Below are positions 12,182 to 61,377 of a DNA stretch of 64,000 nt, one piece after another. Under the pieces are notes generated by a model. That model did no database searches. It was not told the origin of the DNA and was given only the letters and a program-made list of their open reading frames with translations. The first letter of the stretch is position 1. Every line of letters starts with the position of its first letter. Origin of the DNA: Oopsacas minuta (Eukaryota > Animalia > Porifera); NCBI GenBank assembly GCA_024704765.1, contig JAKMXF010000343.1, positions 973,095-1,037,094 on the forward strand, in the 5' to 3' direction. The position numbers and the translations under genes are program-made.

Positions 12182-13399
12182 TATTGAGTATTAACTCGAA
12201 AAGTATCAGGATGATACTGTGCGCATTAGAAGTTATATCGAAATTTAACCTTGTGGCAGAACTTATGCCCCACCCTGTACATACTATTAGGAAGAGATTG
12301 CCCAGTCATGTATTCAATATAACCACGCTTTTGAGAAATGACAGCCCTGAGTCTGTTCGGGTATCCTTCTACTGCTGTAGGCAGAGTTTCTTGGGGGTAT
12401 CTTCTCCCATTCTTGACACAACGAAATCTTTAGAGAGCCAACTGTGTTGTATGACACAGAACAAGTCTTGTTTTCGAAGATAGACCAAACAGAATAGTCC
12501 ATGGGATTTAAATCGGGACTGTATGATGGCCATTCATCCTTGTATATAAAATTGGGAATATTGTGCACCAACCAATCTTGGGTCGTATTAGCCGTATGGG
12601 CGGAGCACTATCTTGTTGGAAGACAAATGGATGTCCAGAAAACATGGTCTGGCTCAGACCTTTTACCACAGGCTCTAATACAAGCTTATGGTATGTTTTG
12701 AGATTGATTTTCACACCAGGGGGGAATGAAATCAATGGTGTCTGGCCAACAGCAGAGACCCCAGCCCAAATCATCACCGACAGCGGTTTCTTCATCCGAC
12801 ACATATCTGAGCCTATCAGGAATCGCTGAGACTGAGGTCGAGATGACTCTGTCGTTTTACTATTTGTAGCCTCTTCAATTGTGAAAATTTTCTCATCTGA
12901 GAAAAGGGTATTTTCGAGAAGCCCAATACCGTGTAGAGCAAGTAGGCTCTTGTTCCGGGACACTCTCTTTCCTTTTACCGACCCAGATAATAATTGTACA
13001 TTTTGCGTTTAAAAGAGCGCATTCCTAGGTCCCTTTTGACAACAGTTTGTATTGCTCGGCGAGATATATTGAGCTCCAGGGCCATTTCCTCATCGAATTG
13101 TGTGGGTTCCGCCGAATCCGTTCTCGGACAATTTTCTTGAGAGCTGGAGTCTTACAGAGCATGGACGACCAGATCTCGGCTTGTCTACAGTGTCCCCAGT
13201 TTCCTTATATCGATTTATTGTCCTGTAGATAAATGCCCTACGTCCTTCTGCAATATTCAGCAGTTTCAAAATTTCTGAGGGACTTTTCCCCGCCACATGT
13301 AAACTCAATAATTGCTGACCTCTCAGATTCCATGGTCAATCACAATATTTTTTCGAAATATTATACACTAAATTGAAATGATATTCGTTAGGAAGCGTT

Positions 13400-14880
13400 A
13401 GGATACCTTTGTAAGCTGATGGTACCAATGAAGCACAATGGAAAAACATGGTTTTTTGTAAGAAAAGAATATCTTGGTCATAATGCCAATACTTGTATTG
13501 CCATTTCCTTCAGGTTGATCGCATAATAAGTTTGTTACTTCATTAATATGGTTGCAAATTAATGATCTATAGTCTCAAACTAATTGATCTTCTGACTACT
13601 TAGATTTACCAGCAGCAATCCTGTATATAACATTCAAGAACCGATATAAGATTCTAAGATGAGAATACAATGGAGCAGCTGGGAGCACATCAAAGATGCT
13701 TGCAGGTTCGTGGGCAATTCCACTTCTCTGAACAGATTTATGACTTAAAACTTCTTTTCCCTCTGAAGTTAATTGACGAATTGTTTCTTTAATTTCGGCG
13801 ATTAAGCAATCCAATGGAAAACCGCATACTACTTTTGCTGATTGTTAACATCGCTACCGTCTGATTTGCAAGCAATACATGGCGTACCACCCTTTCCTGA
13901 AATCTCTGACAATAATTTCCATCGAACGTTGAGGCTATAATCGACATATTGACTTGACCATTTGTGGAATCAAAACCATTTTGGTGAAGTGAACCGATTT
14001 CAGGGTTGATTAAGTTTCACAAGTCTGTTACTAAGTCAATATTCTCTTTTGGACCAATTAATGCAACTCGTTGATTGGAAAAGGCTGAATTTCGGAATTC
14101 GATTTCACAGAGAACCGTTCCAAATCGATCCGAAAACTTAAGCGGAAACACCATGAAAATTATGTGATGTGAATGGTCAATATTCAGGTTAGAAAGGAGG
14201 TTAGTGGAAGAATGGTTTCCGGAACCATCTAGCACATGCTTTATTTGGAAATGTAAAGGATAAAAGTGTGGTACTGGTATGTAGAGTTGGCACATTTCCA
14301 TTATTCGATGAAAGAGATATATATGATATATAAACTCCTATAGGGTTTGAAATTATTTGGATACCAATGAAATGTTGGTACAATAGAATTTCTGAACTAG
14401 CGAATTTGTTCCCAAGTAGACAGATTTAAACCATCAGATTTAAGATAATGCCTGTCCATTTGTTTCTTCCTTGTTTATGATGATAAGCTATGAAAGTAGA
14501 CTTTCGGGGAAACTTCCTTATTACATTTTCTAATACTTCTCCAGAATAGATTTGTCAAGCAGTGTTTGCGATATTTTTCAACCCGATTTTTTCGATTACT
14601 ACAATATACGAGTGCAATTCAATATACCGAATAACTGAAGTATTTTCAAGTGATGCTAAATGGCGGATAGAACTCAATAACCCAATCTGATCCAACCTGA
14701 TTTTCTTCGATTTGATTTGAAGCTCATCTAGCAGCTTTCTCCTCTCAATATCTGGTTCGATTTTTAATTCGAAATCAATACAAGAATGAGTTTGCTTACT
14801 GGTAACCTGAGGCTCCATCATACGCCATAGAATATTACCACCCCACCACTCGCCGTCTAGTTTATCTACTGACCTCATAC
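13400..14880 (-). pseudogene. Degenerate Transib/RAG1-like transposase relic
   Basis: Fragments align in order to the intact 57.9-60.0 kb protein: RRKLLDELQIKSKKIRL, LDGSGNH, NSAFSNQRVALIGPKEN, FDG(K)IMSEISGKGGTPCIAC (needs one frameshift), QRSGIAHEPAS...PLYSHLRILYRFLNVIYRIAAG, GNGNTSIGIMTKIFF. Confidence 0.8.
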
Positions 14881-16389
14881 TTTTCTTGACGCTCTTAGAA
14901 ATTGTGTATAGTATACAGAAGGTTTCAATTCTTCCCCAAGATTGAGGACTGTTATTATTTCTTGGACTGTTTGCGTGATATCAAAGTCATTTTTTTCCAA
15001 TATGAAGGCAAGGTCAAGACGGTTTTAAAGAAAAATAATTGATCAACCATTACAATATGAAAAGATTACATGTGTAATATATTATCTATTCAGACATGTA
15101 AATATTATGTTATTATATAATGAGACTTTAACCATATATAATGATGTAGTGACTTCTTACCCATAGCAACGCCAAATGCGTGAATAGAATATAATTGGAT
15201 TTTTTGTAGTTGCGCTCAATGAAGCAGCATTTGAAATTTCATAATGATGTTTACAAAGGTTGCAAAGACTACACATGATTATTTTAGGGTAGTAATCAGT
15301 GGTCATTGATTTTACGGTTACGTTAAAGGACATAATTTTTTTGTAAAAAGATATTTTTGTCACCTTTATCTGTACCAAATTATAAATCTGATATTCATAA
15401 TAACCGAAAAAATGAGTGGTGCATATAATTTATATGTTCCTTTTTGCTCCGAATTCTTAAATTATCAAGAATAATTATTATATTTTGTAAATATTTGAAA
15501 TAATGTTGTTTTATCACGCTATTTTCAGAATAATTTCCTACTACAATTAATACCTACATTACATGTGACATAACTAGAGAATTATTTAACGCAATGAAAT
15601 GAAACTTGATAATTTGTTTATTCAATAAATGTACATAATATTTTACCAGTCATATAAACTAATCAATTGTAAGAAATTTTCCTAATACACCCTAGTAACC
15701 AACTGTCTGTATATTAACTGGCCTTGTCACATATCCTTGGTCCATATTTCTGAACCAGTGCCATTGCCTAATATTCCATAGGTCATGGGGCAACCATTTC
15801 AATGCTGGCCACTCCATAGTGGTCTGCACAGTAATAATAAAATGAGTAGTGATTCCAATACTGGACCACTACATACTATTCGGCGTAGTAAGAATCCATT
15901 TTTTGCCATGAAATACGTATATACTGAACTAAGCAGTGGATCCAACCAAATGTATTTATTCGAAAATTTCTAGAAAGTATTATAAGTCGGAAAGCAGTGG
16001 TGGGGAATTCTTTGTCCGAGGTTGTGGGTTACTACAAACTATCTCAAAGGAAATTGCATGGGCGTGACTAGTATTGAGGCAGAGGAGGCAATTCCCTGCC
16101 CTCGTTTCAGGGCATCTCCATATCTTTCAATTATAATCGCCAACTAATCGAGGGACATATTCATCCCTTCCGCCTCTCTCTAGGATCTCTAGTTATGCCC
16201 CAGAATAGAAAACAGAATCATGTCTGTGAGGAACTACTTGCTATTATATAGATTTCGCTACAAAATGAAGAAAATTCATAATACCAACGTGAAAAAGAAT
16301 TCGAGTGTACACCCAGATTTGACTACGCCATAATAAAAAAGGGGGTGTGGGCATGATTCATTTTTACACACCTTGACCATGAGCCAGGT

Positions 16390-18340
16390 TGCGGCAATGA
16401 ATGCGTAAACCACCGGATTCATTTTAAATATCTTTGTTTTGGACAACTACAATTTCATCATTAGATAGTGATATTGTGAAAACAAGTATCTAAGAATAAA
16501 TAACTGATAACACAACAAGTAAATTTGGATAATGTCCATAGCTATCAACGCAGTTTCTAGAGGTAAAAGCTTCAGTAACACGCTATTGATACTTTCTAAT
16601 TTGAATGCTGTCATTGCGCGCTTTGCGAGTTTTGATTCAAGATTCAAATGGTGGGAATCAATGCTATAAGCCTGGCAAATTGATCGATTTCTGCTGCTTC
16701 TAGATAGTTTCCTGAAATTGGGTTGAAGGCTTGAATTGCTTTCATAAGGACTCTACTATTGGAATTAAATGGATGGTTTAATTCTACTAACTGTCTATCA
16801 ATGATTGGTAGATATATACTGTTCCTGAATTGTTCTTCCGTAGAAAGGATGGATCGAATACCTACGGAAGATGAAATTTCACAATTTTCCAAAGATCCAG
16901 GTAGTTTTCTTTGTCTAGGTTGCGAAGGAAATAGAAGTCAATGGCATTTAAGTTTGCAACATCCTGAGCATAAGAAATAATTCTTTCCCACTCTTCAATA
17001 GAGCCTAATTCTTCTAAAATCAAAGTTGTGGTGGAGACTAATATGTAGCTGTGGAGAAATCTATATGATTACTATGAAGACATTCAGACAATATATTCGT
17101 ATTGGAAAAAAATCTTATCCAATAATATAAGTGATCAAAATTTAAAGGTTTTTATTTGTAATAGAAGTCCATTAGCTTCAATTACTTTTGAACGATCATT
17201 TCCATGCCAAATTACTTCAAAAATAGCTATTAGTACATCAAAAGTATAACATATTAAGTTCAATTAACAGTAGCGACAGATAACTTTGCCAAATTGCGAG
17301 TTGTTTGCCCGGATGAAATAATTTCTGTTTATTTAGATAAATTGGGTGTGCATTAGATGTTGAAACGAATATGTACAGAGCTTCTATTAAACTGAAAAAA
17401 TCCCTAGCATGTTGTACACTCTTAATGCAATCAACTAAGGCTACAATCAGTGAATGTGCGTAGCAGTGAACATATATTGCCTTTGGTGCAAACGCTTTGA
17501 TGCGTGCTTGGACCTCTCTGCACCTCTCGCTCATGACAAAAGCACCGTAGTAGGCTTGAGAAGCCATATTTAACTGATTCAATGCGTTTTATTTCAACGT
17601 GGTTAAGATATGATGAGGTAAACTTTCTGCATCAAGCGATGAAATTTCAACTTAGGTTAAGAATCTTTCAATTATGATAGAATTAGCATTAACACATCTA
17701 ACACAGATAGAGAGCTGTTCTTTTTTGCTGGCATATTTTGATTCATCAGCTATTAAAGAGTATAACTCAGCAATACGGATGTCAGTACATATAATATCTC
17801 GAACCATATTGCCCATAACATTCAGGATTTCATTTTTTATTTTGCCTGTAAATATTTGACATTTTTCTGGCCCATTTTCATTCTCTTTTTTACTAGAGTA
17901 TCATGATTAGCAACAACACCGAGGATTTCAAGAAAATTTCCTTTGTTATTAGACTCAAATGATTCATCATGACCCCGAAGGGAAATCTCGGTTCGACTAC
18001 ATAATAAGAAAACTTCAGCAACAGTTTTCAAATAATGTGTTATCAAGGTTGACTCGTTCTCTTCTACTAGTTTCTAGACGATGATAAACTGGTGTTCCAA
18101 ACTGTCCATTTAATTTCCAATCTGTCCAGGATTGCATAGCATCAATGTGAGATTTAGCAGCAGCGTGACAAGAAAATAATTCCATCCTTTCCTACTGAAT
18201 GTTTCCAATCATTAAAACCAAGTTTTGTAAAAAGAATGTTTAGAATATTTTCTGCCCCTTGGAAAATGACGGCAAGGAAAACAATATACCGAATCTTTCG
18301 TAATAGAGTACTCTAGCCATTCATAAATGAGCAACCAGCC
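16390..18340 (-). pseudogene. hAT transposase relic, ZMYM1-like (TTF zinc finger, DUF4371 region, hAT C-terminus)
   Basis: WLEYSITKDSVYCFPCRHF near 18.25-18.33 kb, LRGHDES..NKGNFLEIL, AIYVHCYAHSL, IYLPIIDRQLVELN. Multiple stops and frameshifts. Confidence 0.8.
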
Positions 18341-19094
18341 AGGATTAAATATACTTTTTTTCCTCCAATAGAAGTCGATGGGAATATAGTTAGGAACCTA
18401 TCGGGCTGAGTAGGTTTTTCCTTCGGTCCTTTAGAAATATTCCTAGGAATACGGATATCACTAACGCTGGATATGGGAGTAACAGCATTTCCATCCCGAG
18501 GAAGTGTGATATGTACAAGATAATCGGAAGAGTGTACAGCAATATTCTCATTTGTGTCTCCTAAAACAGCGAAATTAGCAACTTCAATTCCAGCTGTTTC
18601 CTAGAAACTAGTCGGAGAATAAGACTGAGTTGCATCAGTAAGATTAAATAACGAAGAAATTGTAACGTGAGAATAATTATTAGTCACAAGACATTGCCGT
18701 TTCGGTTGAAAATCAAAGAGAGTTAATTTGAACCCAGATTTGGGATTAGAGATTGTACTAAATTGTGAAAGAGATGTTAAAAAGAAAACAGGAGCATTAA
18801 ATAATTAAAGAAAATACTTATCGTGCTGTAATCACCATTGCGATGATAAATATCAATAGCAATTGTTAGAAAGCCAATTACCCCGAGAAGCTAGAACACT
18901 CTGAATTGCATTCTAAGTACGTGTATTCAAAATTACAACTTTAAAGATTATTATACAATATGGGTTGATAAAAATTAAACTAACTCATTGCGTATAATGA
19001 CGCTAAATATTAACATAAGGTGACGCGGTCTGCTTTTTGTTATCAATATCGAGTTAAGAATAATCTAGTATAAAAATTACGCCTATATCACATC

Positions 19095-19197
19095 TTAGCA
19101 ACTCAGGGACAATTTTCATTTACCGGGGCCTGTACCTGGGCTCAATCCTCATTTCCCCAGGACAGGCCCGGGTAGCCCGTGTGTAAGTCCACCACTG
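19095..19197 (-). repeat. hAT-like terminus with GGGCC/GGCCC subterminal repeats, possibly the 5' end of the ZMYM1-like element
   Basis: Reverse strand reads CAGTGGTGGACTTACAC.... No matching TSD was found with the candidate left end at 16057. Confidence 0.35.
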
Positions 19198-20130
19198 ATT
19201 TGCTCGTTAAGAGATGTAGTAGGATGTTAAATTCCATAAACATAAGTTATAACAGTAGAACAGTCTTTCTCAAACTATATCTTTAAAGAAAAAAGAATAG
19301 TAGAAAAAGACGATGGAAAATGACAGTAAATCCCACATTCTTTACAAACCTAGTATTAAAATAAAGAGAGAACAGATACAAAAGGGTTTCGACTGTATGA
19401 AAATGAGGACGTTGACGGACAGATGGTCTTTAGTTTCAACTGTTAGACTAAATTCATACAATATACATTTGGAATTTTGATTTCTATCGTGAACTACACA
19501 ATAAAAAGACTGGAAACTAAATTAGTTTCGGACCAGGGATAAATAAGAGTATTGTAGTTGGGTCGAAGTCAATAACTTATGATATTAGAAAATATACTTA
19601 AGCTATCATCAGGTTTCACAAATATGATGCGATGAAACACGCATTCGACATAAAAAACAATTTTCAATTCGAAAAGACATCAGGTTCGCCTAATAGGCTG
19701 ATATGTTGGAAAATTCTACACTATAAAACACAAATAGCCAACTTTATCATGACAAGTTTTGATATTTTGTACAAATGAATATTAGGAATATTTCATAATT
19801 GAACTTTGAAATCAAAGACCAATATTTTTCGTTATATTGGTAGACTTTAAGGTAATAACTAGCAAGACTCTATCAACCATTTAGTGATGGGTAATGAAAA
19901 AGAGAATCACAATAATATAAAAACTGTATAGTATACCTATTATTAAGAATATGCTAGGACATAATGGCTAAGACTCGATGTCATCACATAAACTCAGTAA
20001 TGTGTATTAAACTATATTATAACTAAATGAACTAGTAGTAATGCTATAAGAATAGGTAAATATCTAGAAATACATTAGAGGCAATGTTGCTCGAATTACA
20101 AAAGCTAAAGAAGGAACATTTAGGGAGAAT

Positions 20131-22788
20131 TCAAGTTAAATATATTTTGTGCCAATCGTTATTTCCAAAATTTGCATTGCATTTAGGGCATTTTCTTTGT
20201 CTAGTTTCATAACGTGTTTTAATACACTCACCACAAAAAACATGAAAGCATTTAGTGAGGATGTGATCCTTCTTACGTTGACTACAACATGGACATGTCA
20301 GCTCCGCCTTATATGTCTTGACTTCCTCCATCAATATTTCATCTGTAACTGCGTGGTATTGTTGGTGTTTCTTCTGTTTATCAACTTTCTTACTTTGAAT
20401 TGTAAGTTCCTCTTTCATGCGTCTACACCTTTGAAATTCATCATCATATTCGACTGTCTTAGAGAGAAGAATCTTTTCAACTTCTTTCATCTGGCGAAGT
20501 GCCTCGTCAAGTTTGAATTTAGTATCTTGAAGGTACTGGGTACTTTCTAGAGATTTCTTTTTATAATTATCGACGAGTTGATCTTTTAATTCTAATTCTT
20601 TTTCCAACCCGTTTACTGCAAGCTCAAACTTCCTATCTCTGTCGATTAGTTGCTGGTTTAAATCGCGAGATGATTGTAATTCTCTTTCTAGAGACTTGGC
20701 TTCTTTTTGAATCATTTCTCTCTCTTCAAATATTCGTTTTTGAACTTGATTAGCTTTTATCCTTTCGGACATCAGCTTGAAATTAGCGTCATCCTTTTCT
20801 TTGATTTGTTTAAGTAATTTGGAAACCCTCTCTTGCTCATCTTCGTATGCCTGTCCAGTTACTTCCATTTCTTTCATAAATAACTCTTGTTCTTGTTTCC
20901 TACCCTGTAATTGTTGTCGAAGGTAAGAAATTTCTTCTTTTAGAGTATGTGTTCTAATATGCAATCGCTGATCATAATCTTCCCTCTTTTTAGATAGTTC
21001 CTTATTTTTGTCATCTATTTGATGCTTCAATTCAAATATTTCACTGGCAGGTCCGAATTTCCGTATATCCTTTACTTCTCCCTCTTCTTCTTCCAAATCT
21101 CTTAGTTTATTCCCAAGTTCTCGGACTGAGTCTTTCAATTCACTAATTTCCTTTACATTACACGAGCTAAGGAAATCAAATTCTTCCCTTTCATTGGTTT
21201 TTTCTTCCTGGAGGCGATCTGCTAGGTTTTGTGACTCAGCGGATTGTTTTCGGTACCTATTCAAATCTTGTTTTACTTGGTGCAAGTTATTTCTTAATGA
21301 AGTGATAGTGGCATCCAACTCTCTGTTCGAGACAAGAGCTTGTTCACAACTGGAAGTCCTACCCTCATAATCTAATCTGAGGGAATCGCAATCACGACGA
21401 GAGAGAGCAATTTCTTGCTCTAACCTTGAGATACCATCTAAAGCTTCCATTTTGATTCGAGCCTGTTTAGTTAATAATTCATTCAACAGTGTGCTGTTTT
21501 GCTGTTTACAAGTAAGAAGCACTTTTCTATGCTCTTCACATTGATTCTTTAAGTGAATATTTGCAGAACAAACTAAAGTGTATTGTGTTTGCAGAGATTT
21601 AAAAGTTGGGGATTGTTTAATTTCCCAATCCTGTAATTTTTTTCCCTCGAGTTTCTTCCGCTCTAATTCTGCTTTGGTCTCTGTAAGCATTTTTACTAAC
21701 TCGTCCGTTTCGCGCAACCGAGAATCAGCTAGATAGCGAAAATCTTCCTGATCCTCTTTTTTTGCGGAAGTTTCATCTGTAGTAGTAGAGTGGGAGGTTG
21801 GAGTAGACGTTGAGTCTTTTCGCAGTGAAATACTATAGTCCAAGTCAATATCCCGTTCTTGGGTATGTTTAGAAAGTAATATTCCAAGGCGGTGTTCAAG
21901 TTTGCAAATCTTACTTATTGCCCGGTCTAACTCGAACCTATAATTTTCAGAAAATTCTCTGGTTTCTAAGAGCTGGTCGGTTAGATTATTGTGTTGATGC
22001 TCAAGATTCAAACTCTTTTCCTCCGCATAACTAGCATCATTGTACAATGACTGGATTTGAGTTAGAAGTCGATTGTTTTCCTGTTGAAGTTTAATAAGTT
22101 CTTCCCCCAAAATAGAATCAAAATTCATCAATCGGGAACTCTCACTCAATTGACGAAATATAGCTTGAGAGTGTTCTCTTTGTCGGTTAAAAGTTGAAAC
22201 GAGTTTCTCAACAAGTTCACGGGAAATTCGTGATATGTGACATAAACCCTCTTCTATATTTTCATAAGAATGACCAACGTTGGAGCGAAAATAATTGGAT
22301 TCTTGATTGGAAATAGAGAAGATATTTGCGGTAATGTATGATTCATTATCATACTCAGAAGTTATATCCTCTTGAGAAGTAGAGTTTACAAGTGGTAGAG
22401 GATTTGACACTGTAAATTTATAAAGAATGGAATTTAAATCGCTATTTAGTGTTTGCCATACTGATTTGATGTAATTATAGTTATGATCATACTTCTCCCT
22501 ATTATCAATTATCCGAAGACGATCTCGCTGAAATTCTTCCTCGCGGTAGGAATATTCTCGAATCCGTTGCATTAACATTTGATTTTGTACTAAGAGTGTT
22601 TTCTTGTCCAAATCTGCCTCAGATGTAACATTACTGATACCAAATGTTGTAGATAAATGCAATTTTTTAATCGGAGGAATACATCCTGTACTACTCGTAG
22701 GTGTATGTGAATCCTGAGGACTTGTGAGAGAACGAGAATCAACAGGATGACAACGCTTTATCCCAGCCAAGAGGTCATTTGATGCCAT
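20131..22788 (-). CDS. BRE1: E3 ubiquitin ligase BRE1 (RNF20/RNF40 orthologue; H2B monoubiquitination), 885 aa, single ORF
   Basis: Long coiled coil and a C-terminal C3HC4 RING: LTCPCCSQRKKDHILTKCFHVFCGECIKTRYETRQRKCPKCNANFG, diagnostic of animal Bre1. The first ATG is at 22788 (MASNDLL); the track start at 22851 is a GTG. Confidence 0.95.
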   Translation of the reverse strand: MASNDLLAGIKRCHPVDSRSLTSPQDSHTPTSSTGCIPPIKKLHLSTTFGISNVTSEADLDKKTLLVQNQMLMQRIREYSYREEEFQRDRLRIIDNREKYDHNYNYIKSVWQTLNSDLNSILYKFTVSNPLPLVNSTSQEDITSEYDNESYITANIFSISNQESNYFRSNVGHSYENIEEGLCHISRISRELVEKLVSTFNRQREHSQAIFRQLSESSRLMNFDSILGEELIKLQQENNRLLTQIQSLYNDASYAEEKSLNLEHQHNNLTDQLLETREFSENYRFELDRAISKICKLEHRLGILLSKHTQERDIDLDYSISLRKDSTSTPTSHSTTTDETSAKKEDQEDFRYLADSRLRETDELVKMLTETKAELERKKLEGKKLQDWEIKQSPTFKSLQTQYTLVCSANIHLKNQCEEHRKVLLTCKQQNSTLLNELLTKQARIKMEALDGISRLEQEIALSRRDCDSLRLDYEGRTSSCEQALVSNRELDATITSLRNNLHQVKQDLNRYRKQSAESQNLADRLQEEKTNEREEFDFLSSCNVKEISELKDSVRELGNKLRDLEEEEGEVKDIRKFGPASEIFELKHQIDDKNKELSKKREDYDQRLHIRTHTLKEEISYLRQQLQGRKQEQELFMKEMEVTGQAYEDEQERVSKLLKQIKEKDDANFKLMSERIKANQVQKRIFEEREMIQKEAKSLERELQSSRDLNQQLIDRDRKFELAVNGLEKELELKDQLVDNYKKKSLESTQYLQDTKFKLDEALRQMKEVEKILLSKTVEYDDEFQRCRRMKEELTIQSKKVDKQKKHQQYHAVTDEILMEEVKTYKAELTCPCCSQRKKDHILTKCFHVFCGECIKTRYETRQRKCPKCNANFGNNDWHKIYLT

Positions 22789-23559
22789 TATAATTGTAAG
22801 GTGTAAAAACAACTGAAAGAAAATAGAGAAGGATATGGTAAATAAATACACGAATTATAATACAGAGAGGCAAAATAGCCATTTATGGTACACATGTATA
22901 GTAGAACCTCCCGAGATCTCGACCTCCAAGATCCGATCACTTCTTTAATCCGGGTACCATTTTCTAAGAATTTAACCATTACAATTTTCCATATAATAGA
23001 GCTATAGATATACCCCAACGAATAACTCTTCATATGCTGATCATCACACCGTTTTACTGTTTATTGCAAAATATAGACAAGAATAATAGTTTCTATGATA
23101 AATATGACCCTAACATAACATAGAGTAGAGATTTTGCATAATTTACTATGATAAATCAAAAATATAAAATTGGGTAACACAAGTTATTGCTAGAAATGCT
23201 GGTCACATGGGGTGTATGGCTATACTTCATGTTTAACATTTCACAATAACCACAACCTTTAAAACATCCGGTTTCGAAAAATCTTATGTATCTCGATATT
23301 ATATATTATATACAGATTGGATCCACCCTAAAGCATAGCTACTAAATTTAAGGCCCAACAGTAAAAGTACCAGGGACGTAGTATTAGCTGAAAGCATTTA
23401 TAGACATGGTTTCTTCATTGCAAAAATGTGTCTAGTAAGCATTGATTTGGTAAATTATATCATTCATTGATGTCTTGTAGAACGACAAGTATTACATTTA
23501 TCAACTCAAAGTGAATAACTGAAATGATCTATAGATACTTTTATACAAAATGTCAAAGA

Positions 23560-24390
23560 TTTTTATTCAAAATTTGCTCATTGTTGAGTTACGGTGGAGA
23601 CCATGGATGACAATTTTTAATGATATTCAATTATAACTCAAGAATAGTTAATGTTACGGTAAAATAATATTAACCAATTTATACCATATACCCAACTTCC
23701 CATACCCTTGTAAATACCAACTACCAAATGTATATGTAATTATCGCAAGGTTAAACGAACCTGTAGTTATCAAATGACATCATTTGATAATGAGCAAAGT
23801 AACATGATTACGGCCGGAAAATGTGTGCATGTATGACGTCTAAAACGTGAAAACATCTCGAAAAATTACTGGATGAACGAAGTGGTAAATCATACAGGAG
23901 TGTTGATATGGTTATCTCGAATGTTTAAAAAATCATGGTGCTAAAATGTTTCCAATCTGATTTTCACATTCGGAAAAATGCTACAAATGATTGAAAATTC
24001 GAGCTTTTGTGAATTGAGGAGCTAAATTTTCCTGAAAAGTGACAAATTTAATGATGAGTAAGTAATTTAATTAATTAACCATTCAAATTTCAAAAAGTGG
24101 GAAAATAATGGTGGAACTCCGGTATTTATCAAACTATTATAAAATTGATTCTGTAAATCAGTAAGCTTTCAATGACAAATATCAACATAAATTAAGATAA
24201 AATTTTAACATAATGAAAATAAGTTTTGACAAACTCTCAGCAAAATTATGAAAAACGTTCCAATTAGAGGGGTTTAGGGAAAAATCGGCCTATGGTTGAT
24301 ATCATATTCAATCCCTTTGGAAAATATAGCAGAAAGTCAGAGACTTAGTCTCTGCTTTCTCTTTTAAACCCTCAATTAAATGTGGCCAAT
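23560..24390 (-). repeat. Copy 2 of the unclassified hairpin-bearing repeat (inverted relative to 6960-7800)
   Basis: Hairpin CAGAGAC-TTA-GTCTCTG at 24338-24354. The reverse complement of its flank matches 7009-7070 (CTAT.TTTTCC.AAG...AGGCCGATT.TTCC). 23570-23715 resembles 7935-8080. Confidence 0.55.
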
Positions 24391-24842
24391 CGAATAACGT
24401 CGGTTAGAGTTACGTAAAATAGATAAATTCCACAGAGTATCACATGGGAGGATTTAAGTGACCATTACCCAGAGATACTCCACGGGAGCGAGTTACTCTT
24501 GGGAACAATCAAGAGATTGTGTAAAATTAGCCGCAGCACGGCCATGGCAGCACTTAAGGTAGCCCATACAATTGAAGGATTTTAAGTGAGTTCAGCTTTC
24601 GCTAAGTAGGCGGTTAATAGACAGGCGCAGCGGAAACTATGAATATAAGGAGTGGCAATACTTTTCTGGATCAGGGATAAGTAAGAAGTGTATTCGAGTG
24701 CTTGGAATAAGCAGAAACTCGTATTATTAGGAAATTTATATTATGGCTAACATCAAATTTCACAAATATGACTTAAAGAATCAAACACTCCCTATCTAGA
24801 AATATTTCCAGGTCGAAAAGGCGTCATGTGTTCGTCTAATAG

Positions 24843-24999
24843 CATGGGCGAAGAGCCGTGGGGCCTGGGGCCCAAAATTTCCAGCAGGTCCTCCAAAAAT
24901 TATAGAATTCATTGATCATACTAAGGGAGAGTGGGAACCTGGATAGATTTTGGCGACTAAGCCCCCCTCCTAAAAAGTCCTGTTGCTGATACGCCTATG
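24843..24999. mobile_element. hAT-type MITE
   Basis: Ends CATGGGCG... / ...CGCCTATG. 8-bp flanks TCTAATAG (24835-42) and CATAATAG (27916-23), the latter displaced by the next insertion. Confidence 0.6.
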
Positions 25000-25001
25000 C
25001 A

Positions 25002-27911
25002 CAGACTTGCCAACCCTCCAGGGATCCCTGGATTACCCCGGGATTTGACCTCTGATCCAGGGATTCGAAAGTTTGTATCGGCCGGGTAAATTGTGAATTT
25101 TCAGCTACGATGTTAATAACTATGAGTGTTACATAACAATCAATAAGTTATTCTTCAGAACTAGATTATATGGAACCTAAAAAAGATCCAGAGATTTCCC
25201 TGGATCATCCAGATATTTCCCTGAATCTTTAGTTAGAGAGTTACAAGCTCCTTCTCAGACGTATGGGTTCTTGTTGAGTTATATAATATCTCCGATATGT
25301 CTATGCATATAATCTATACGAATTATCTTCGAACAACTCCATAATGGTGACTTCCAAACTGGTTTATAAGTGAGAAGTAAAATGATCCAGGGATTTCCCT
25401 GGATGATTTGTCAGGGAGTTCCAAGCTCCTCCTCAGACGTACTGGTAATGGTACTGGTTCTTTTTGGATTTATAATATTTGCGATATGTTTTGTTTTCTG
25501 ATTTCAGTTTTTAATATGGGGCATGGTTTCATTCAGAAATTTGACTTGATTACAGTTTATTATTCTCCTGATAATCATTGAGCCTATATTTTATTCTATT
25601 TTAGCTTTTTTTCAATTTACTATATCTATATGACTGCAAAGAGACCAAAGATATTATGTAGATACAAGGAAGAGTGGGCCAGCGTTAGAATGAAACCAAG
25701 CAAGAAGGGCGTTGGTTTTCCGTTTTGTACGATTTGCCAAGTTGATATTTGTATTTCTGGTGGTGGGAAACATGAAGTAGATCGTCACCTAAAGACAGCT
25801 AAACATAAAAGTTTGCTAGGTCAAGTAGATGAACAACCTTCTATTTCTACTGCACTAGTGGCTGCGGCATCTTTGAACCCCTTGAACAAACAAGTTATGT
25901 CAGCAGAAATATATTTCTCCTTATTTATCGCAGAACATAATTTGCCCTTCCTCGTCGCAGACCACTTCACTCATTTGACTAAAGTTATGTTTCCTGATAG
26001 CCACATTGCTCAATTTTATTCATGTGCCCGAACAAAAACAACAGCCATTATCACTCACGCTTTGGCTCCATCTCTTAGAAATATGGTCAATGATAAATAC
26101 CGCTCTGAACCATTTTCAATCCTTTGTGATGGCGGCAACGATATGACAGATCATAAATATTTTACTGTCCTGGTGAGATATTGGTGCAATAGAAACAACC
26201 AAGCTATGACACGATTTCTGGCAATGCCAATTTGTAATTTTGCAACAGCTCAAAATCTATTTGATGCTCTAAGCACTGTTTTCGAAGAACGTAATCTTCC
26301 TTGGGAAAATGTGATCGGATTTGCGTCAGATACCGCAAACGTTATGGTTGGAGCGCGTAACTCAGTACTCAGTTGAATACGTGAAAAGCAACCACGCGTG
26401 TTCAGTCTCGGGTGCTTGTGCCACTTGGCTCACTTGTGTGGTGCTGCTGCACTACAGTCTCTCCCTATATCTGTGGATGTTTTACTTATTGATGTTTTTT
26501 ACCACTTCAAATATAGTGCTAAGAGATGGGAAGAATTTTCTGTGATCCAAGCTGAGTTTGAGGAAATCAAACCAGTGAGAGTTTTGAAGCACTGCACAAC
26601 CAGGTGGTTGAGCCTACTTAGGTGCCTCAAACGCTTGCTTGAACAGTGGCCAGCCTTGAGAGCATATTTTGACAGGCAGATGGATATAGAACCGAAAAAC
26701 AACGGTGTTAAAAGAGTCGCTGACTCTTTAAATAGTGTGAAGGTAAAATTAATTTGTACATTTGCACACTTCGCCCTTCAGCCACTCAACAAATTTACTA
26801 TAATATTTCAAACTCATGCTAGCCGCATCGGTGCCATAAAAGAAGATACACTATTACTTCTTCGTGGTTATTTAGCTGATTTTATACCACCTGAAATAAT
26901 TATCGCTACAACTGATATTCTAACCATTGACTATCGTAACAAAGTGAACCAGTTACCTAGAAATAGTCTAGTGGTTGGGAATGACACTTTAGATCTTATT
27001 TCAGAGTTTGAAGATGAAATACATGGCACCTTAATAGGTGACAGGTTCTACGATAGTGTTCGCTTGTTTTATGAGACTGTTGTCTCAAAAATGCTCGCTT
27101 AGTTCCCTCACAGGAACGATACATTAAGCGGTTTAGCGTTTCTTAACCCTACACATTGTTGTATCCAATCCATTACACGCCTCTGTAAACAATTCATGGC
27201 TACTACTTCTGAGGAAATTGACCAAATAATTCAAGAGTTTGTTGCTTATAAGATTACACCAGATAATCAGCTTCCATCATATAACCCAACAGATATAGCT
27301 GCTATTGACCATTTCTGGTCAGCAATGAGCAGGTTAGAAGTGGTTACTTCAGTAGATCTTTCTGATTCCCCTCTTGCTACTCTAACTTATCAAAACTTTC
27401 AAAGATACTTCTCACTCTACCGCATTCAAATGCTGATCCAGAACGTTTATTCAGCATGGTTAAAAAAATTGAAACTGATTCCCGTTCTTTATTGAGCCCA
27501 TCCACAACATGTGATCTGCTCAATATAAAGATGAATCACGATACAGCTTGTTACTTAAGTCAGGATCTTATTCCTGAAGAATTGATAGAGATTGCCAAGA
27601 AAGCTACCCAGAAAAGCCTCGAAAAGGGGAATTGAATAATTTAGATATCATTTATAACTATATTTTTATAGACTATTGTTACTTCTTGAAAAGTAAACTA
27701 CTTTCGAATTTTGTATGTAGCTTTTCACCCAATCGAGGGCCGAAAGCCACAGTGTAGACCCTGTTATTACTTATAGGTATTAATAAATATTAGAATTATT
27801 CTAAATGGGAGAATATAAAGTGTATTTTATATATTCAATTATTGGGCCCGTAAATCCAGGGATTTTAAGATTTCAATCCAGGGAATTATCAACGAAGGGT
27901 TGGTAAGTCTG
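25002..27911 (+). mobile_element. hAT transposon with a 6-bp TSD, 2910 bp
   Basis: TIR CAGACTTGCCAACC / GGTTGGTAAGTCTG. TATGCA at 24996-25001 and 27912-27917. CCAGGGAT subterminal repeats at both ends. Confidence 0.88.
25630..27637 (+). pseudogene. hAT transposase pseudogene (two in-frame stops plus a 3' frameshift)
   Basis: BED-like FCTICQ...RHLKTAKH, FSILCDGGND, GFASDTANVMVG, GCLCHLAHL (CxxH), TTRWLS. ORFs 25630, 26398 and 27196 share a frame. Confidence 0.9.
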
Positions 27912-55097: not shown

Positions 55098-57333
55098 CAG
55101 TGGTTGCCAACCTGAGGTACGCGAGTCATTTTGTTAAGTGTACGCGAACTGCTTAATCGAGGTATTATCGATTATTGGTAACTATAATTTGTAGATTCAA
55201 GTTGACGAATAATAATAATGTTGGCGTAAAAACTTCCTGTGATACAATGTCTACTTACGTATGTATTCATTAGTTTAGTGTTTTATACAAACATCATATT
55301 TCAGTGATGAATATAAATAGATAGTCTATACTTTGTTATTACATACATTCTTGCTCATAAATTCTTATTACGTACATTCTTATTCTTCAATATCGTACCC
55401 TTATTCTTAATGACACCTAGAAAGAAAGACGAATGTATTCCGACGAATATATTAAACGTGGTTTTACTTCAAACAATATCAATAACATTGAGTGTCCACA
55501 GTGCGTTATCTGCTTTAAAACACTTTCTGCTGACAGCGTGAAACCAAGCCTTTTGAATAGACATTTAGAAACATGTCATCCTGAACTTAAAGGGAAGATC
55601 CCTCGTACTTTCGACGAAAAGAAAGTGGTGTAAAGAAAGTTTAGATACCCCTGGGAAGTTTAATCAGCTTTCAGTTTCAGCTTCAGGAATTGAAGTGTCT
55701 TACGTTATTTCCTTGAAAATAGCTCAACAAAAGAAACCACAAACAATTGGAAATTTTTGGTCCTTCCTTGTCTCAAAGAAGTAGTTAGTTTAATGTTAGG
55801 TAAAGATAACGTTAAGAAATTAGCACCATTATCCATTTCCAATAACACCGTTCACTGTCGTATCGTAGATATGTCAGAAGATGTCAAGTTACAAGTTGTA
55901 TCCGAGATGAAAACAGCACCGTTGGGTTTATTCAGCATCCAGTTAGATGAGTTGACAGATGTAGCTTCTTGTGCTGAGTTAATTTGCTTCACCAGATATA
56001 TTGATGATGGCGATTTCAAAGATGACTTTAAATTTTGTCTACCATTAGAAACAACACCAAGAGGGAATTGACGTATTTGAAAAAGTTAAAGAATTCATTA
56101 TTGATAACTGTTCGATCTGGCAGAACCTATGTGGTGTGCGTACTGATGGAGCTCCAGCAATGTTAGGACGTTATTCAGGATTTCAAGCCAGAGTTAGAAC
56201 TCAAGTTTCAGATGTTTTGTCACTTCATTGCATGATACATAGATATGCTCTTGCTGCTAAAACACTCTCACCTTTGCTTTTGGATGTTATGTCTGGGGTT
56301 GTCAAAGTGGTAAAATACATTAAGCGTAGTTCTTTGAATACACGTCTATTTCGAGAGTTTGTAAAGATCTCGATGCGAGTTCAGAAATCCTTCTATTTCA
56401 CACGAAAGTGCACTGGCTATCCAGAGGTAATGTTGTTAAGCGAGTGTTTGAAGTACGAGCCTAAATTCAAGAGTTTTTTCGCAAAAGAATCAACAAGACT
56501 TAATGTTGCATTTTAACATTGACGAGCTGAGCCTAAACTTGCCTACCTCGTTGATATTTGTTCTCAACTGAATAGACTAAATTTATCCATGCAAGGAAGA
56601 GAAAACACAATACTTGACTTTGTGGGTAAGGTCAATGCATTTATAATGAAATTAGATCTGTGGAGTGGTAATTTAGCAAAGGAAAATTGGACCAGTTTCA
56701 TACTTTGAATGCGCTCACTACTGAGAATAAGGCAGTTTTAGATGTTGAAACGAAAGAGGTAATCTTGGAGCACTTGAGAGCACTACTTAAAGAATTTTTA
56801 TCACTTTTGAAGATGTGAATAACAGAGACTTCAAATTTGTCAGAAATCCTTTCAAAGTTGATATTAATTCAATCCCAGAAGCCGAACTGAAAGAATTCAT
56901 TGAAATGATAATGATAGCAATGCAAAAGAATTGTTCACTGAAGTTCATCAAATTAGTTTTTGGCGTAAGATGGTCAATGCGTACCCCAAAGTATCTAAAC
57001 TGCCAATTAGACTGCTAATCCCATTTCCTTCCACGTACTTGTGTGAATCCGGTTTTTCGACACTATTTCAAATAAAAATCAAACACAGGAATCGATTTTC
57101 TGTTCAGGACGGCATGCGATGTGCAACTGCAAATACCTCGCCAGACATTAAGAAGCTAGCTGCATTGAAGCAATCACAATCATCTCATTGAGAAACATAA
57201 TGTATTATAATATAATTCTTTCTAGTAAAATAAACATTAATATAATAAATTCAGCTATACTTTTTCACAGGGGTACACGGGAATTCTCCTATCGCGAAGG
57301 GGTACGTGAGTTAGGAAAGGTTGGGAACCACTG
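55098..57333 (+). mobile_element. Full-length degenerate Buster-group hAT transposon, 2236 bp
   Basis: TIR CAGTGGTT(G/C)CCAACCT. Perfect 8-bp TSD CTATAGAG (55090-97, 57334-41). Frameshifted ZBED5/8-like transposase: PQCVICFKTLS, FSIQLDELTD, TDGAPAMLG, HCMIHRYAL, PFPSTYLCESGFS. Confidence 0.95.
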
Positions 57334-57592
57334 CTATAGAGAGAGAAATAAGGCTTAATGGTATTTGGATAATATATATCAAATACTAGTTGTAGCTGTG
57401 GTCTGCAATTCGGGGTTAATTTCCCCATCGAGGGTAATTTCAGGTTTACTGGCGGTAACGAGAGCTATCTGGAATAACTTAGTATTTTTATAACTTTGTG
57501 CCTAGAAACCAGTACAACCAATCATATTGATTGTATAAAATATTAATAATGATTATGTGATAGTGCTCGGTGGCAATAAGAGCCACATAATG

Positions 57593-57628
57593 CACAGTGT
57601 GGCAAAATGGCCATAATGGGGAAATAGG
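57593..57628 (+). repeat. Transib/RAG1-like TIR at the 3' end of the transposase (long form)
   Basis: CACAGTG-TGGCAAAATGGCCATA-ATGGGGAAATAGG. Confidence 0.9.
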
Positions 57629-57898
57629 TAAATGAATCTGTATTATCGCCACAATTATACTTACATATACTAAATCGACACTGTAGATTTCAAAAATACC
57701 AATGATTATTTAGTAGCACGACTATAAACCTAGTTATGACGTAATTACTGACATTTTCTAATTTTTAACACTTGTGGTTCATTAGTGAGGATATTATGAA
57801 AGTTGACAATACATGCATGTCATGGTCTCTATTCTGCTATTTGATAACGTACAATTTAAAGACCCTTAATTATGTATGACTATTGGATATACTTATTA

Positions 57899-60031
57899 TC
57901 ATAAATCATCTGATAGTATACTATTATATAATATCTCTTGGAGGCTATTTGCAACGTCTCTTTTCTTCTTTGCGTGCATCAAACGATTCTGTACTAAGAT
58001 GGGGTCACTACAACATAACAACCTGACTAAAATATCTCTAACATTATCAGTGAAAGAAGTTTTTCTTGCAAGATTCTCCCGATACCGCCTTACAAATTTA
58101 TTGCAGGATTCTAAACATTCCTCAGAGAGATTCTGTAATCCCTTACCATTATTATAAGCACCTATTAACTGAAACGAATGGGCAAGTAACTTGTGCAAAG
58201 ATGGAGTGATGCTTGCCCATGGGTACTCAATTAGAATAAATTCGTACGTTTCTTTGCACAATTCTTGCATTTTGTCACAGTTAATCAAGTCACCACTGTT
58301 GAGGAGTCTTAACAAAACAGATAGATTTGTCTGGATCTTCTCTAATGATATTTTATCTGAAGGATTAATGGAAGAAGTGGCCCACGTCAAAAAGTCTCTC
58401 TTATTTAAAAAGCAGTCTCGCGCAATGTTACCAGTGGTTGAAGTGCCGCCCTGGCTTGAAGGGATATCGACACTGAAATTACATCTTTCCTGGAGTATAG
58501 CTCGAACCCGTTTCATGGAAAAATTTACTTTCGAGTTTGATGGCGCCCATACCTTGTGTCCTGCATCAAGATGGTATATCAACAGCATGAACCACCTGAA
58601 TACACAAAGGTAAGCATGCAAAGGAGATGCAGCTATAATATCGATGTTAGAAGTTGGTTGATGCGTAATACCAACACGTTGATTTGATGGGAGTTTCAAG
58701 TAATCTTCTTCATCAACCTCTTCAAAAAGTTGCCGAGCGTCGCTAATTAGTCTGTTAATAGGGAAACCAGAATGGGCCCATTCTAAACTTTTAATTTGGC
58801 TATCCGTTGCAGTACACAGATGACAAGAAGCCCCACCAGCTCCATCCAGCAATCCTGCCATCTTGGTATCAAAAAGGGAACGGACTATCTCGACCTGTGC
58901 ATGGCCTCCAATAAGAGATAACCCATCCTGTATGATATGGTCTGTTTGAGGATTGACTATTGTATTCATGATAAGCTTTACACTAGAATAATCTTCTTTC
59001 AGAGCTATCAGTGCTACTGGCCTAAAGCAGAACGGAGAGTTGGGTGAGCTGTTATAGAACACGTCATTTCCAAGTGTGTCTGTAATTGATATTACTTTGA
59101 ATCCGAACAAAATGAAAGTTTTTGTGCTTAATGCAGAATTGTTGCTTTGTTGGTTATAGGTTTGATGACAACCGGAGCCATCCAATCCATCAGATATCTT
59201 AATTTTGAGTGGGTAGTGTGAATCAGGAACTGGGTCTAATGTTGAAAGCAAGCGTTGAATGGTCAGACTAAGGATGGAATGATAAGAGACGCAAGTCCCA
59301 ATTGACAATGCTTCGGGGTCTCTGACTATTTCCATTTCATTTATTAGGCTTATTTCCCTACGATATTGCGAGACAAGTTTATAGGAAGGAAGCTTAACAT
59401 CACCTTTGAGAATTCTTTTCAGATTCGTGTATTTACTCGCCCCAATTTCTAATCTGTCCAATATATAAGCACATTTAGAGATTTGTACTTTGTTCAATAC
59501 ACCGCTAAAAGATCCCTTATCAATTATTTCTCTGCACATGTCTGAAGTATCACGGTCATAGGATTTATTTGAGACTAATTCTAAAGCTAGAGCGAGTAGT
59601 TGTTTAGGCTCAATCTTTTCTCTCTCTGCTAAAAAGTCCACATGCTCTAAAAGAACACCAAGTCTCGATCTGGAAGTCTTCATGTGACATTCGAGAATAT
59701 GCTTCCGGGATTCAGTTACAATCTGTTCTGAAAAGTTTCGATTTTCAGAATCAGTGACTAAAGAAAATTCAGGATCAAGCGATATTCTCTTTCTTGGATT
59801 GGATATTGTTAGATGAGTAGAGTGGAAAATCATATTATCCCATGTTTCAAGATCCTTCCTGCGGTAAGCCTCTCTGGATGTTAGAAGTGATTTAAATTTT
59901 AAATGAAGAGTAGCAGTTTCTTCTTCGGATAAATGGTTGTTCTCAATAAGTTTCCTAACAGAGACTGTAACACTTCTTCCATTCGAAATATACAAACTAT
60001 ATGCCTCATTGTTGGTGATTAGTACAGACAT
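57899..60031 (-). CDS. RAG1-like/Transib DDE transposase, 710 aa from the first ATG
   Basis: SDGLDGSG (D284), FDTKM (D388), CHLC plus HKLLAH zinc ligands, PLHAY, GTSTTGNIAR, SEECLESCNK (E641), RLLCCSDP, and an NBD-like segment near residues 109-170. The track start at 60040 is a TTG. Confidence 0.93.
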   Translation of the reverse strand: MSVLITNNEAYSLYISNGRSVTVSVRKLIENNHLSEEETATLHLKFKSLLTSREAYRRKDLETWDNMIFHSTHLTISNPRKRISLDPEFSLVTDSENRNFSEQIVTESRKHILECHMKTSRSRLGVLLEHVDFLAEREKIEPKQLLALALELVSNKSYDRDTSDMCREIIDKGSFSGVLNKVQISKCAYILDRLEIGASKYTNLKRILKGDVKLPSYKLVSQYRREISLINEMEIVRDPEALSIGTCVSYHSILSLTIQRLLSTLDPVPDSHYPLKIKISDGLDGSGCHQTYNQQSNNSALSTKTFILFGFKVISITDTLGNDVFYNSSPNSPFCFRPVALIALKEDYSSVKLIMNTIVNPQTDHIIQDGLSLIGGHAQVEIVRSLFDTKMAGLLDGAGGASCHLCTATDSQIKSLEWAHSGFPINRLISDARQLFEEVDEEDYLKLPSNQRVGITHQPTSNIDIIAASPLHAYLCVFRWFMLLIYHLDAGHKVWAPSNSKVNFSMKRVRAILQERCNFSVDIPSSQGGTSTTGNIARDCFLNKRDFLTWATSSINPSDKISLEKIQTNLSVLLRLLNSGDLINCDKMQELCKETYEFILIEYPWASITPSLHKLLAHSFQLIGAYNNGKGLQNLSEECLESCNKFVRRYRENLARKTSFTDNVRDILVRLLCCSDPILVQNRLMHAKKKRDVANSLQEILYNSILSDDL

Positions 60032-60677
60032 GATCCGCAAAAGGGCTACTTTAACATAGAAACATTATGATATATGATTGTAGAGTATTGGAATAACTAA
60101 TAACCAGCAAAATATAGAATTTTACTGAAAAAATTTAAAACGTATGAAAAATATATTTTTCGGATTTTTGTCCGGTCCGGACAATGAATGACGTGATAAA
60201 TTTTTGGGCAGCTTTTGGCAAGCCTGGAAAGTGATTAAATAGTTGACTAAATATAGTAACATTACTTATATATTAATAACGTTTTGTCAAATTTTGTCAA
60301 ACAAGAGATGCTACACTTCAATCAATGAGAAAAAATTCCAAATTATAACTTTGGGAGGGCCAAACTAGACACCCGGAAAAAAGTACAAATGAATATCTAG
60401 ACTAACCTATCAATGATTAAATTGTTGTTACAATATAGATTTATTATCAGAAGATGTTTTTCACTCTTATATTTAATATTTACATCAAATATGATTACAT
60501 ACATTAGGGCATAGGAATTTGAGGTTTGAAAATATATATTTCTATTATTAGAAACACATAACAAAGTTGTGCGTAGTTAGGATTCCTAACTGCTTCTAAT
60601 GCTGCCAATGATATTTTCGTACTAATTGAACAATGGAGAATTCGAAAAATGCATTGAAATATGTTTTTTAAAATATG

Positions 60678-60704
60678 CCTATTTCCCCATATTGCCACAC
60701 TGTG
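60678..60704 (-). repeat. Transib/RAG1-like TIR at the 5' end of the transposase (short form)
   Basis: The minus strand reads CACAGTG-TGGCAAT-ATGGGGAAATAGG. Confidence 0.9.
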
Positions 60705-60921
60705 TAATGCCTGTGAACACCAATTTGTCACAGTGTGTATTTTAGTAAACCATAAATGAAAGTCATGAAACTTTGACAATATTGCTAATAGGCGAATCGC
60801 TAATGCACGAACACCAGAGTAGTTCCTGAGGTCGGAGCTACGGTGATGTTGTGAGCTCTGAATTAGGGTATTCATCAAGGGTAATTGCCAACCACTGAGT
60901 TATAATATTGATGTTGTAGGG

Positions 60922-61377
60922 CAGGCATGTACAACCCCGGCCCGCAAAGACATTTCATCCGGCCCGCATAGGACAAAACTTATAGAATATATAATCGCCC
61001 ATATCCTTATTTTATTAACCCATAATTGATATTTTCAATTTCTATATTAGATATTTTGGATATTTAATCAATTTCCTGAATACCCATAATACATGACTGA
61101 TATGACTGCTAAGCGAAGAAAAATTGACTTTGAATGTCATGCATTCAATGATAAATGGACTGAAGAATATTTTTTTATTTTTCAAGAAGACAGACCCATT
61201 TGTCTTATTTGTTCTCAATCAGTAGCTGTAATCAAGGAACACAACATTAAGCGCACTATATGCTTAAACATGCTGATAAATATATAGTTATTACTGTGAA
61301 TAAAAATTAACAGCCGGCCCACAACATAGTTTGAATACCGTATTATGCCCACTTCTCGAAAAGGTTGTACATGCCTG
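60922..61377 (+). mobile_element. Internally deleted Buster-group (GTF2IRD2/EPM2AIP1-like) hAT derivative, 456 bp
   Basis: 15-bp TIR CAGGCATGTACAACC. Perfect 8-bp TSD TTGTAGGG (60914-21, 61378-85). GGCCCGC subterminal motifs. Residual N-terminus KRRKID.ECHAFNDKWTEEYFF...PICLICSQ. Confidence 0.92.

Follow-up and report, generated by a model that had tools for sequence, protein, structure and literature searches.

A 64,000-nucleotide stretch of the genome of the glass sponge Oopsacas minuta (assembly GCA_024704765.1, contig JAKMXF010000343.1, positions 973,095 to 1,037,094 of the forward strand; hereafter "the window", with coordinates counted from its first letter) contains an element of 3112 bp at 57593-60704. 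With a probability of about 0.9, this element is an autonomous DNA transposon of the Transib superfamily, one of a family whose amplification is very recent and which is possibly still mobile. It is accepted that Transibs are related to RAG1, one half of the V(D)J recombinase. As expected of a Transib, the sponge element comprises one gene for a RAG1-core-like DDE transposase and includes no RAG2-like gene.

The element is delimited by a perfect 13-bp core of terminal inverted repeats (TIRs). The left tip, CACAGTGTGGCAA, occupies 57593-57605 (plus strand) and constitutes the 3' end relative to the gene; its exact reverse complement at 60692-60704 (minus strand) constitutes the 5' end. At both tips, the core opens with the heptamer CACAGTG, which conforms to the CAC..TG pattern of Transib TIRs, and TAATG is found directly outside, at 57588-57592 and 60705-60709, as the perfect 5-bp duplication of the target site (TSD) that a Transib is expected to leave. 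Further inside, a second inverted box, the 13-mer ATGGGGAAATAGG, is present at either end—at 57616-57628 (plus strand), starting at element position 24 of the 3' end, and, 9 bp nearer to the tip, at 60678-60690 (minus strand), starting at element position 15 of the 5' end. The box is preceded by 14 bases at the 5' end and by 23 bases at the 3' end; this 14/23 spacing difference, an asymmetry of the kind described for Subgroup I Transibs, stems from a 9-bp insertion between core and box at one end. The same layout, with a GGNAATAGG box, recurs in two other sponge families whose proteins are about 40% identical to those of the window family, one family represented by a further O. minuta locus (L009) and the other by a locus from an ENA assembly with a perfect GGTAT duplication (L011). 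Given that CACAGTGTG occurs three times in the window, as compared to 0.28 expected occurrences, the element ends are not due to chance.

Between these ends lies a single uninterrupted open reading frame (ORF) on the minus strand, 57899-60031, encoding a transposase of 710 amino acids from ATG, plus stop, which matches HzTransib (Helicoverpa zea), the amphioxus RAG1-like (RAG1L) protein BbRAG1L and RAG1 in the PDB and shares their fold in an AlphaFold model. Outside the ORF, the element has 673 bp on the upstream side of the gene and 306 bp on the downstream side, leaving no room for a RAG2-like (RAG2L) gene; in the ORF list, no second ORF of at least 150 amino acids is found inside the element and, thus, a RAG2-like kelch gene is absent from it. 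The protein (P0028) is encoded in exactly this form in GCA_024704765.1 and is identical, save for one residue (R160C), to KAI6648100.1 (LOD99_11909), a protein annotated in O. minuta.

The DDE triad of the transposase is intact and is formed by D284 in a GLDGSG motif (codon 59180-59182), D388 in an FDTK motif (58868-58870) and E641 in an LSEECLESCNK motif (58109-58111), all read from the minus strand. In an alignment of 33 sequences, the columns of D284 and E641 are invariant and that of D388 is nearly so. The first Asp aligns with DGMGD of RAG1 and with the corresponding motifs of HzTransib and RAG1L, the second with MIDGK of HzTransib and YDEK of RAG1, and the Glu with SEGNESGNK of RAG1. Likewise intact are the C2H2 zinc ligands, that is, C403-x2-C406 of ZnC2 (58814-58825, minus strand; nearly invariant), aligning with CTLC in both RAG1 and RAG1L and with CYLC in HzTransib, and H613-x4-H618 of ZnH2 within SLHKLLAH (58178-58195, minus strand; invariant or nearly invariant), aligning with LHKTLAH of RAG1. 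The codons of the catalytic residues and of the two histidines were checked individually. An initial annotation of the window, made from the letters alone, had already described the CACAGTG heptamers in a 13-bp core, the TAATG duplication, the uninterrupted ORF with its DDE and zinc ligands, and the 306 and 673 bp that leave no space for RAG2L; all of these features were recovered.

The recent history of the family is evident from eight loci that were compared, namely the window copy and seven others, also full-length, at different places of the assembly. Across all 3112 bp, the seven show 99.74-99.90% identity to the window copy; all copies end at identical bases, with similarity stopping at the heptamers and giving way to unrelated flanks. 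Six of the seven possess a perfect 5-bp duplication of their own (AAGTA, CTTTA, GGCCG, ATTAG, CTTGG and TGTGG). The presence of near-identical copies with individual duplications implies that the element has moved very recently. The copies diverge from their consensus in a star-like manner by 1-7 private changes each (0.03-0.2%), with a mean pairwise difference of 0.2%. Both changes of the window copy fall outside the ORF and, hence, it encodes the consensus protein; five loci, the window included, encode an identical protein, at least six different full-length ORFs of 710 amino acids are intact, and the 90%-identity protein cluster to which the window protein belongs has 33 members. In contigs of public sequencing runs of the same organism, the summed depth amounts to ~8,000-26,000 on the element versus 7-250 on its flanks (~100-400x), and at precisely 57592/57593 and 60704/60705 the contigs split up into numerous differing flanks, as would be expected for many insertion sites. 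The view taken in the initial annotation, according to which this is a young and possibly active RAG1-like transposon independent of RAG2, is borne out in that the element is young, probably still mobile, has one gene and lacks RAG2. A domesticated gene was also considered as an explanation; with several copies that have TIRs and duplications, this can be ruled out.

Regarding its affiliation, the transposase resembles HzTransib more closely than amphioxus RAG1L or vertebrate RAG1. In a single-sequence phmmer search of the PDB, HzTransib was matched with an E-value of 1.2e-26 and BbRAG1L with 3.2e-4, and vertebrate RAG1 was absent from the matches up to an E-value of 1. A profile built from 33 full-length relatives retrieved HzTransib at 2e-80 (274 bits), BbRAG1L at 9e-59 (203 bits) and RAG1 at about 1e-39 (139 bits). 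The AlphaFold model of the transposase (mean predicted local distance difference test score, pLDDT, 88.4; predicted template-modelling score, pTM, 0.73) superimposes on the HzTransib hairpin-forming complex with a template-modelling (TM) score of 0.84 and on the RAG1 core with TM scores of 0.69-0.77; identity in the fold alignments is 20-22% to HzTransib and 16-18% to RAG1 and RAG1L. An exhaustive search yielded 2274 relatives; ten full-length ones that were looked up are ENA and Logan records, one of them from a Tara ocean metagenome, and word-indexed protein searches with the single sequence and with the 33-sequence profile returned sponge-type proteins only. In a look-up combining language-model and structure comparison, clusters from arthropods, cnidarians and Mucoromycota came nearest, with chordate RAG1 ranking behind them. 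In a tree of 33 proteins, eight sponge-type sequences form one group with a support of 100 in the Shimodaira–Hasegawa-like approximate likelihood-ratio test (SH-aLRT), the window family being sister to the sponge proteins P0002 and P0004. In the literature, Transib transposases are distinguished from RAG1L proteins by low identity to RAG1 and RAG1L, lack of the N-terminal non-core region and lack of RAG2L (PMC7204232); judged from its sequence by these published criteria, the protein is a Transib and not a RAG1L.

Several parts of the protein outside the catalytic residues are informative. An approximate region resembling the nonamer-binding domain (NBD) of RAG1 was delineated from profile and Foldseek matches to RAG1 at residues ~78-170 (59521-59800, minus strand); part of it is disordered and contains a basic arm, NPRKR. 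Positions 88-167 of the family profile have a weak match (E 0.0017) to 3gna, the nonamer-binding domain of RAG1 on its own, full RAG1 chains are aligned from about profile position 83, and Foldseek alignments extend over ~650 columns with RAG1 chains that contain the NBD versus ~575 with chains that do not. The sole disordered stretch of the AlphaFold model, with pLDDT values below 50, spans residues 74-106. Ahead of this basic linker, residues 1-73 (59813-60031, minus strand) make up a Cys-free helical N-terminal domain (pLDDT >80), which is kept in some relatives (e.g., P0072 and P0048 align from residue 6) and lies outside the coverage of the HzTransib and RAG1 core chains. Up to residue 245, there are no more than three cysteines, which are scattered, so that no RING/ZDD domain of the kind found at the N-terminus of RAG1L is present.

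Within ZnC2, residues 417-466 (58634-58783, minus strand) correspond to the alpha11-12 region of RAG1 and RAG1L; alignments from hidden Markov models split there for HzTransib and run through for BbRAG1L and RAG1. The segment comprises ~50 residues, versus ~13 in HzTransib, as described for the alpha11-alpha12 region of Subgroup I Transibs. All but one of the 33 aligned proteins have 49-63 residues here, the exception being the truncated sponge protein P0021 with 35, and the AlphaFold model places short helices at 429-438, 441-444 and 449-452. At the C-terminus, no Cx2Cx3GHx4C knuckle (CTT1/CTT*, also CCGHC), a further trait of Subgroup I, is found in the tail of the window protein. A degenerate version is present in the sister sponge proteins P0002 and P0004, and about half of the non-sponge relatives in the 33-protein alignment have an exact or near-exact one.

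Some observations weigh against the reading of the element as a Transib that may still be mobile. A Pfam scan of the ORF returned no family even at an E-value of 1, and the PF26100 (RAG1_RNase_H) label is present only as a precomputed database annotation; consequently, the family was assigned from comparisons with PDB sequences, by profile and by fold, together with these precomputed labels, and placement in the Transib clan derives from score differences and domain content. One of the seven further copies (L008) has no matching duplication, with AATCA on one side and AATTG on the other. As to present-day activity, neither an empty-site allele nor a joint skipping from 57592 to 60710 was found in the contigs of the sample with the element, whose unitigs stop at repeat borders—the empty sites which the initial annotation had proposed to look for were, thus, not seen—and none of the read runs, present as contigs, is demonstrably RNA.

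The last two observations would fit a family that underwent a recent burst and has since fallen silent, its copies being intact through youth alone, with no current transposition. We regard such a silent family as unlikely, albeit as an explanation to be taken seriously. It is countered by the copies being merely 0.03-0.2% off the consensus, and by the intact ORFs at different loci, including the five that share the consensus protein. Moreover, Logan contigs are unable to show the absence of rare alleles.

Another explanation concerns the clan to which the element belongs. It might be a solitary RAG1L, that is, a RAG-like (RAGL) transposon that has lost its RAG2L gene and represents a true step between RAGL and Transib elements. 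Such an origin would agree with the retention of the ZnC2 segment at 417-466 as in RAG1 and RAG1L, unlike in HzTransib, with the retention of the NBD-like region, and with the existence of relatives whose tail carries the Cx2Cx3GHx4C motif, the defining feature of CTT* in RAG1L (PMC7204232); in addition, loss of RAG2L has been raised as a possible origin of Transibs by Martin et al. 2020. However, HzTransib clearly outscores BbRAG1L and RAG1, the fold-alignment identities rank in the same order, the RAG1-type N-terminal zinc/RING region—which, along with low identity, is a criterion in PMC7204232—is missing, and the very same traits have been published for Subgroup I elements, assigned to the Transib clan by Tao et al. 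A solitary RAG1L is, therefore, improbable. By the same evidence (274 bits to HzTransib versus 203 to BbRAG1L and ~139 to RAG1, and no N-terminal zinc/RING region), the proposal of the initial annotation that the element is a candidate intermediate between Transib and RAG1L-RAG2L elements is not upheld, and the absence of RAG2, which had been pointed out there, is the state that defines the Transib superfamily, with which the element agrees in each of the features tested. Finally, an assembly artefact or a segmental duplication, for which nothing more than the high identity of the copies speaks, can be dismissed as exceedingly improbable, because every copy loses similarity right at the heptamers and sits between flanks unrelated to those of the others, with 5-bp duplications that are particular to each copy (perfect in six of the seven others), and because independent unitigs reach both junctions, with contig depth and fraying at the two tips excluding an assembly artefact.

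Within the Transib superfamily, two subgroups were distinguished by Tao et al. 2022, with HzTransib and most classical families constituting Subgroup II (PMC9435367). In Subgroup I, a part of ZnC2 equivalent to the RAG2-binding alpha11-12 region is retained, along with a CTT1/CTT* tail and asymmetric TIRs, and these authors called the subgroup intermediate between Transib and RAG1L (PMC9435367). Subgroup I elements, such as MleTransib_2823 of the ctenophore Mnemiopsis leidyi and HvuTransib-9 (PMC9435367), agree with the sponge element in having a single gene, a duplication of 5 bp, a 12-13-bp core that opens with CACAGTG and is accompanied by a second box offset by ~9 bp between the ends, and an alpha11-12-like ZnC2 segment along with an NBD-like region. 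In MleTransib_2823 specifically, the CACAGTG-led core measures 12 bp and the second box lies ~9-10 bp further in at one end (PMC9435367 supplement); its protein shares motifs such as GGTSTTGN and DY..R.G....P with the sponge protein but, unlike the latter, possesses a CCGHC tail. The sponge element further differs from the Subgroup I set in its host phylum, Porifera, which is not represented in PMC9435367 or its supplements, and in that the window family is devoid of the Cx2Cx3GHx4C CTT1 knuckle, of which the sister sponge families keep a degenerate one. On sequence grounds, the sponge lineage looks like a Subgroup I-type Transib in which the knuckle was secondarily lost. Since the CCGHC tail is missing and the resemblance to the ctenophore protein is at the level of motifs only, membership in Subgroup I is unconfirmed. 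Tentatively, and at somewhat less than even odds, the family may be the first documented currently mobile Subgroup I-type Transib in Porifera, working without RAG2 and without the CCGHC tail and keeping the ZnC2 segment equivalent to the RAG2 contact, the NBD-like arm and the 14/23 ends.

Among solved structures, the best match in sequence and fold is HzTransib (PDB 6PQN), which is characterised both biochemically and structurally. It shares with the sponge protein the DDE and zinc ligands, a similar C-terminal SDP helix and, probably, RAG2 independence; however, its solved chain of 497 amino acids is shorter, being without the ~40-residue ZnC2 segment and without the greater part of the first 170 residues found in the sponge transposase. 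The RAGL elements—amphioxus ProtoRAG with BbRAG1L-2L and AanRAGL of Aureococcus—have in common with it the RSS-like heptamer ends (RSS, recombination signal sequence), the 5-bp duplication, the RAG1-core fold, the NBD-like region and the ZnC2 alpha11-12 region, and the ends of AanRAGL contain two boxes with 4/13 spacers, which is also a 9-bp offset (PMC9435367). In contrast to RAGL elements, the sponge element includes neither a RAG2L gene nor the RAG1L N-terminal zinc domain, and sequence similarity is much weaker. Vertebrate RAG1 and its 12/23 RSSs show the identical heptamer CACAGTG, two-box signals that differ by one turn in spacing, and the same catalytic and zinc residues. Nevertheless, the spacing offset in the sponge is 9 bp and not 11, the inner box reads ATGGGGAAATAGG and not the ACAAAAACC nonamer, and the sponge element is a mobile element, would need no RAG2 and shares only 16-18% identity with vertebrate RAG1.

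By analogy with HzTransib and RAG, a transposase dimer would pair one short-spaced with one long-spaced end, the heptamer being bound by the catalytic core and the inner box by the N-terminal NBD-like arm, with NPRKR in its disordered linker. Cleavage would begin with a nick at the heptamer border, followed by hairpin formation on the flanking DNA; the element would be excised with blunt ends and inserted with a 5-bp stagger. A RAG2-like partner would probably not be needed, given that none is encoded and none is required by the characterised Transibs.

A number of side observations were made in and around the element and its copies. The third exact CACAGTGTG of the window lies at 60729-60737 (plus strand), 24 bp past the right end of the element; a partner end was sought downstream in the remaining 3.3 kb and none was found. 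It may be due to chance or be the stump of an older Transib-type end. To the left, an 86-residue ORF at 56931-57191 (plus strand) matches the hAT C-terminal dimerisation domain PF05699 (E 1.4e-5) and is annotated in the assembly as a FAM200/ZBED5/GTF2IRD2-like product; it is a hAT transposase remnant situated ~400 bp from the left end of the Transib.

In two read contigs (X1 and X2, depth ~135-143), position 58608 is joined back to 57592 with six extra letters, AGGTAA, which may reflect a sequence derived from the element elsewhere in the genome that has been rearranged or has lost an internal part. In copy L007 (1817-1835), the target by the 5' tip reads CACTGTGG and, together with CACAGTG of the element, forms a head-to-head heptamer palindrome. 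Other copies reside beside further transposase genes (L006:4897-7133 and L008:245-1134), namely a THAP9/P-element-like gene and a Tc3-type helix-turn-helix gene; such neighbours are consistent with DNA transposons accounting for 15% of the O. minuta genome (PMC10280926). In runs of two other organisms (B and C, both from 2024), contigs are 95-99% identical to parts of the ORF (58050-59370) and of the flanks (57288-57431 and 61021-61174), and the contigs of both organisms carry the same variant bases. These could come from close relatives or other sponge populations with a sister subfamily, or the flanks could be other repeats.

In relation to the literature searched, both the family and its host phylum are new for Transibs, but the element is of a kind already familiar. 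The record of RAG1-like transposons that lack RAG2 and have RSS-type heptamers and 5-bp duplications goes back to Kapitonov and Jurka 2005 (PMC1131882), and asymmetric Transib ends have been covered already (PMC8355894). Also the idea of an intermediate is not new, as the same ancestral traits were published for Subgroup I, whose members were termed intermediates by Tao et al. (PMC9435367). With the RAG2-less state, the RSS-identical heptamers, the two-box asymmetric ends and the ancestral segments all on record, the general picture is unchanged. Regarding sponges, the full-text literature on Transib together with sponge or Porifera yielded incidental mentions only and no description of a sponge Transib; the O. 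minuta genome paper does not mention Transibs, and neither Tao et al., supplements included, nor Martin et al. list any from sponges. Within the literature searched, the documented range of the superfamily is, hence, extended to this phylum. The initial annotation had considered the element especially notable in the case of a non-bilaterian host, and a glass sponge is such a host.

More biochemistry on Transib transposases, especially on those with ancestral traits, has been called for (10.1101/2023.08.20.553239). The sponge family offers a convenient test case in this respect, combining an intact consensus gene, exact ends with a one-turn asymmetry in spacing, and many fresh insertions. The CCGHC tail is needed by RAG1L for full activity, and its absence from a mobile sponge Transib, if true, would be unusual. 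If the family is indeed a mobile Subgroup I-type Transib without this tail, it would provide a compact natural model for a pre-RAG2 ancestor reading asymmetric signals.

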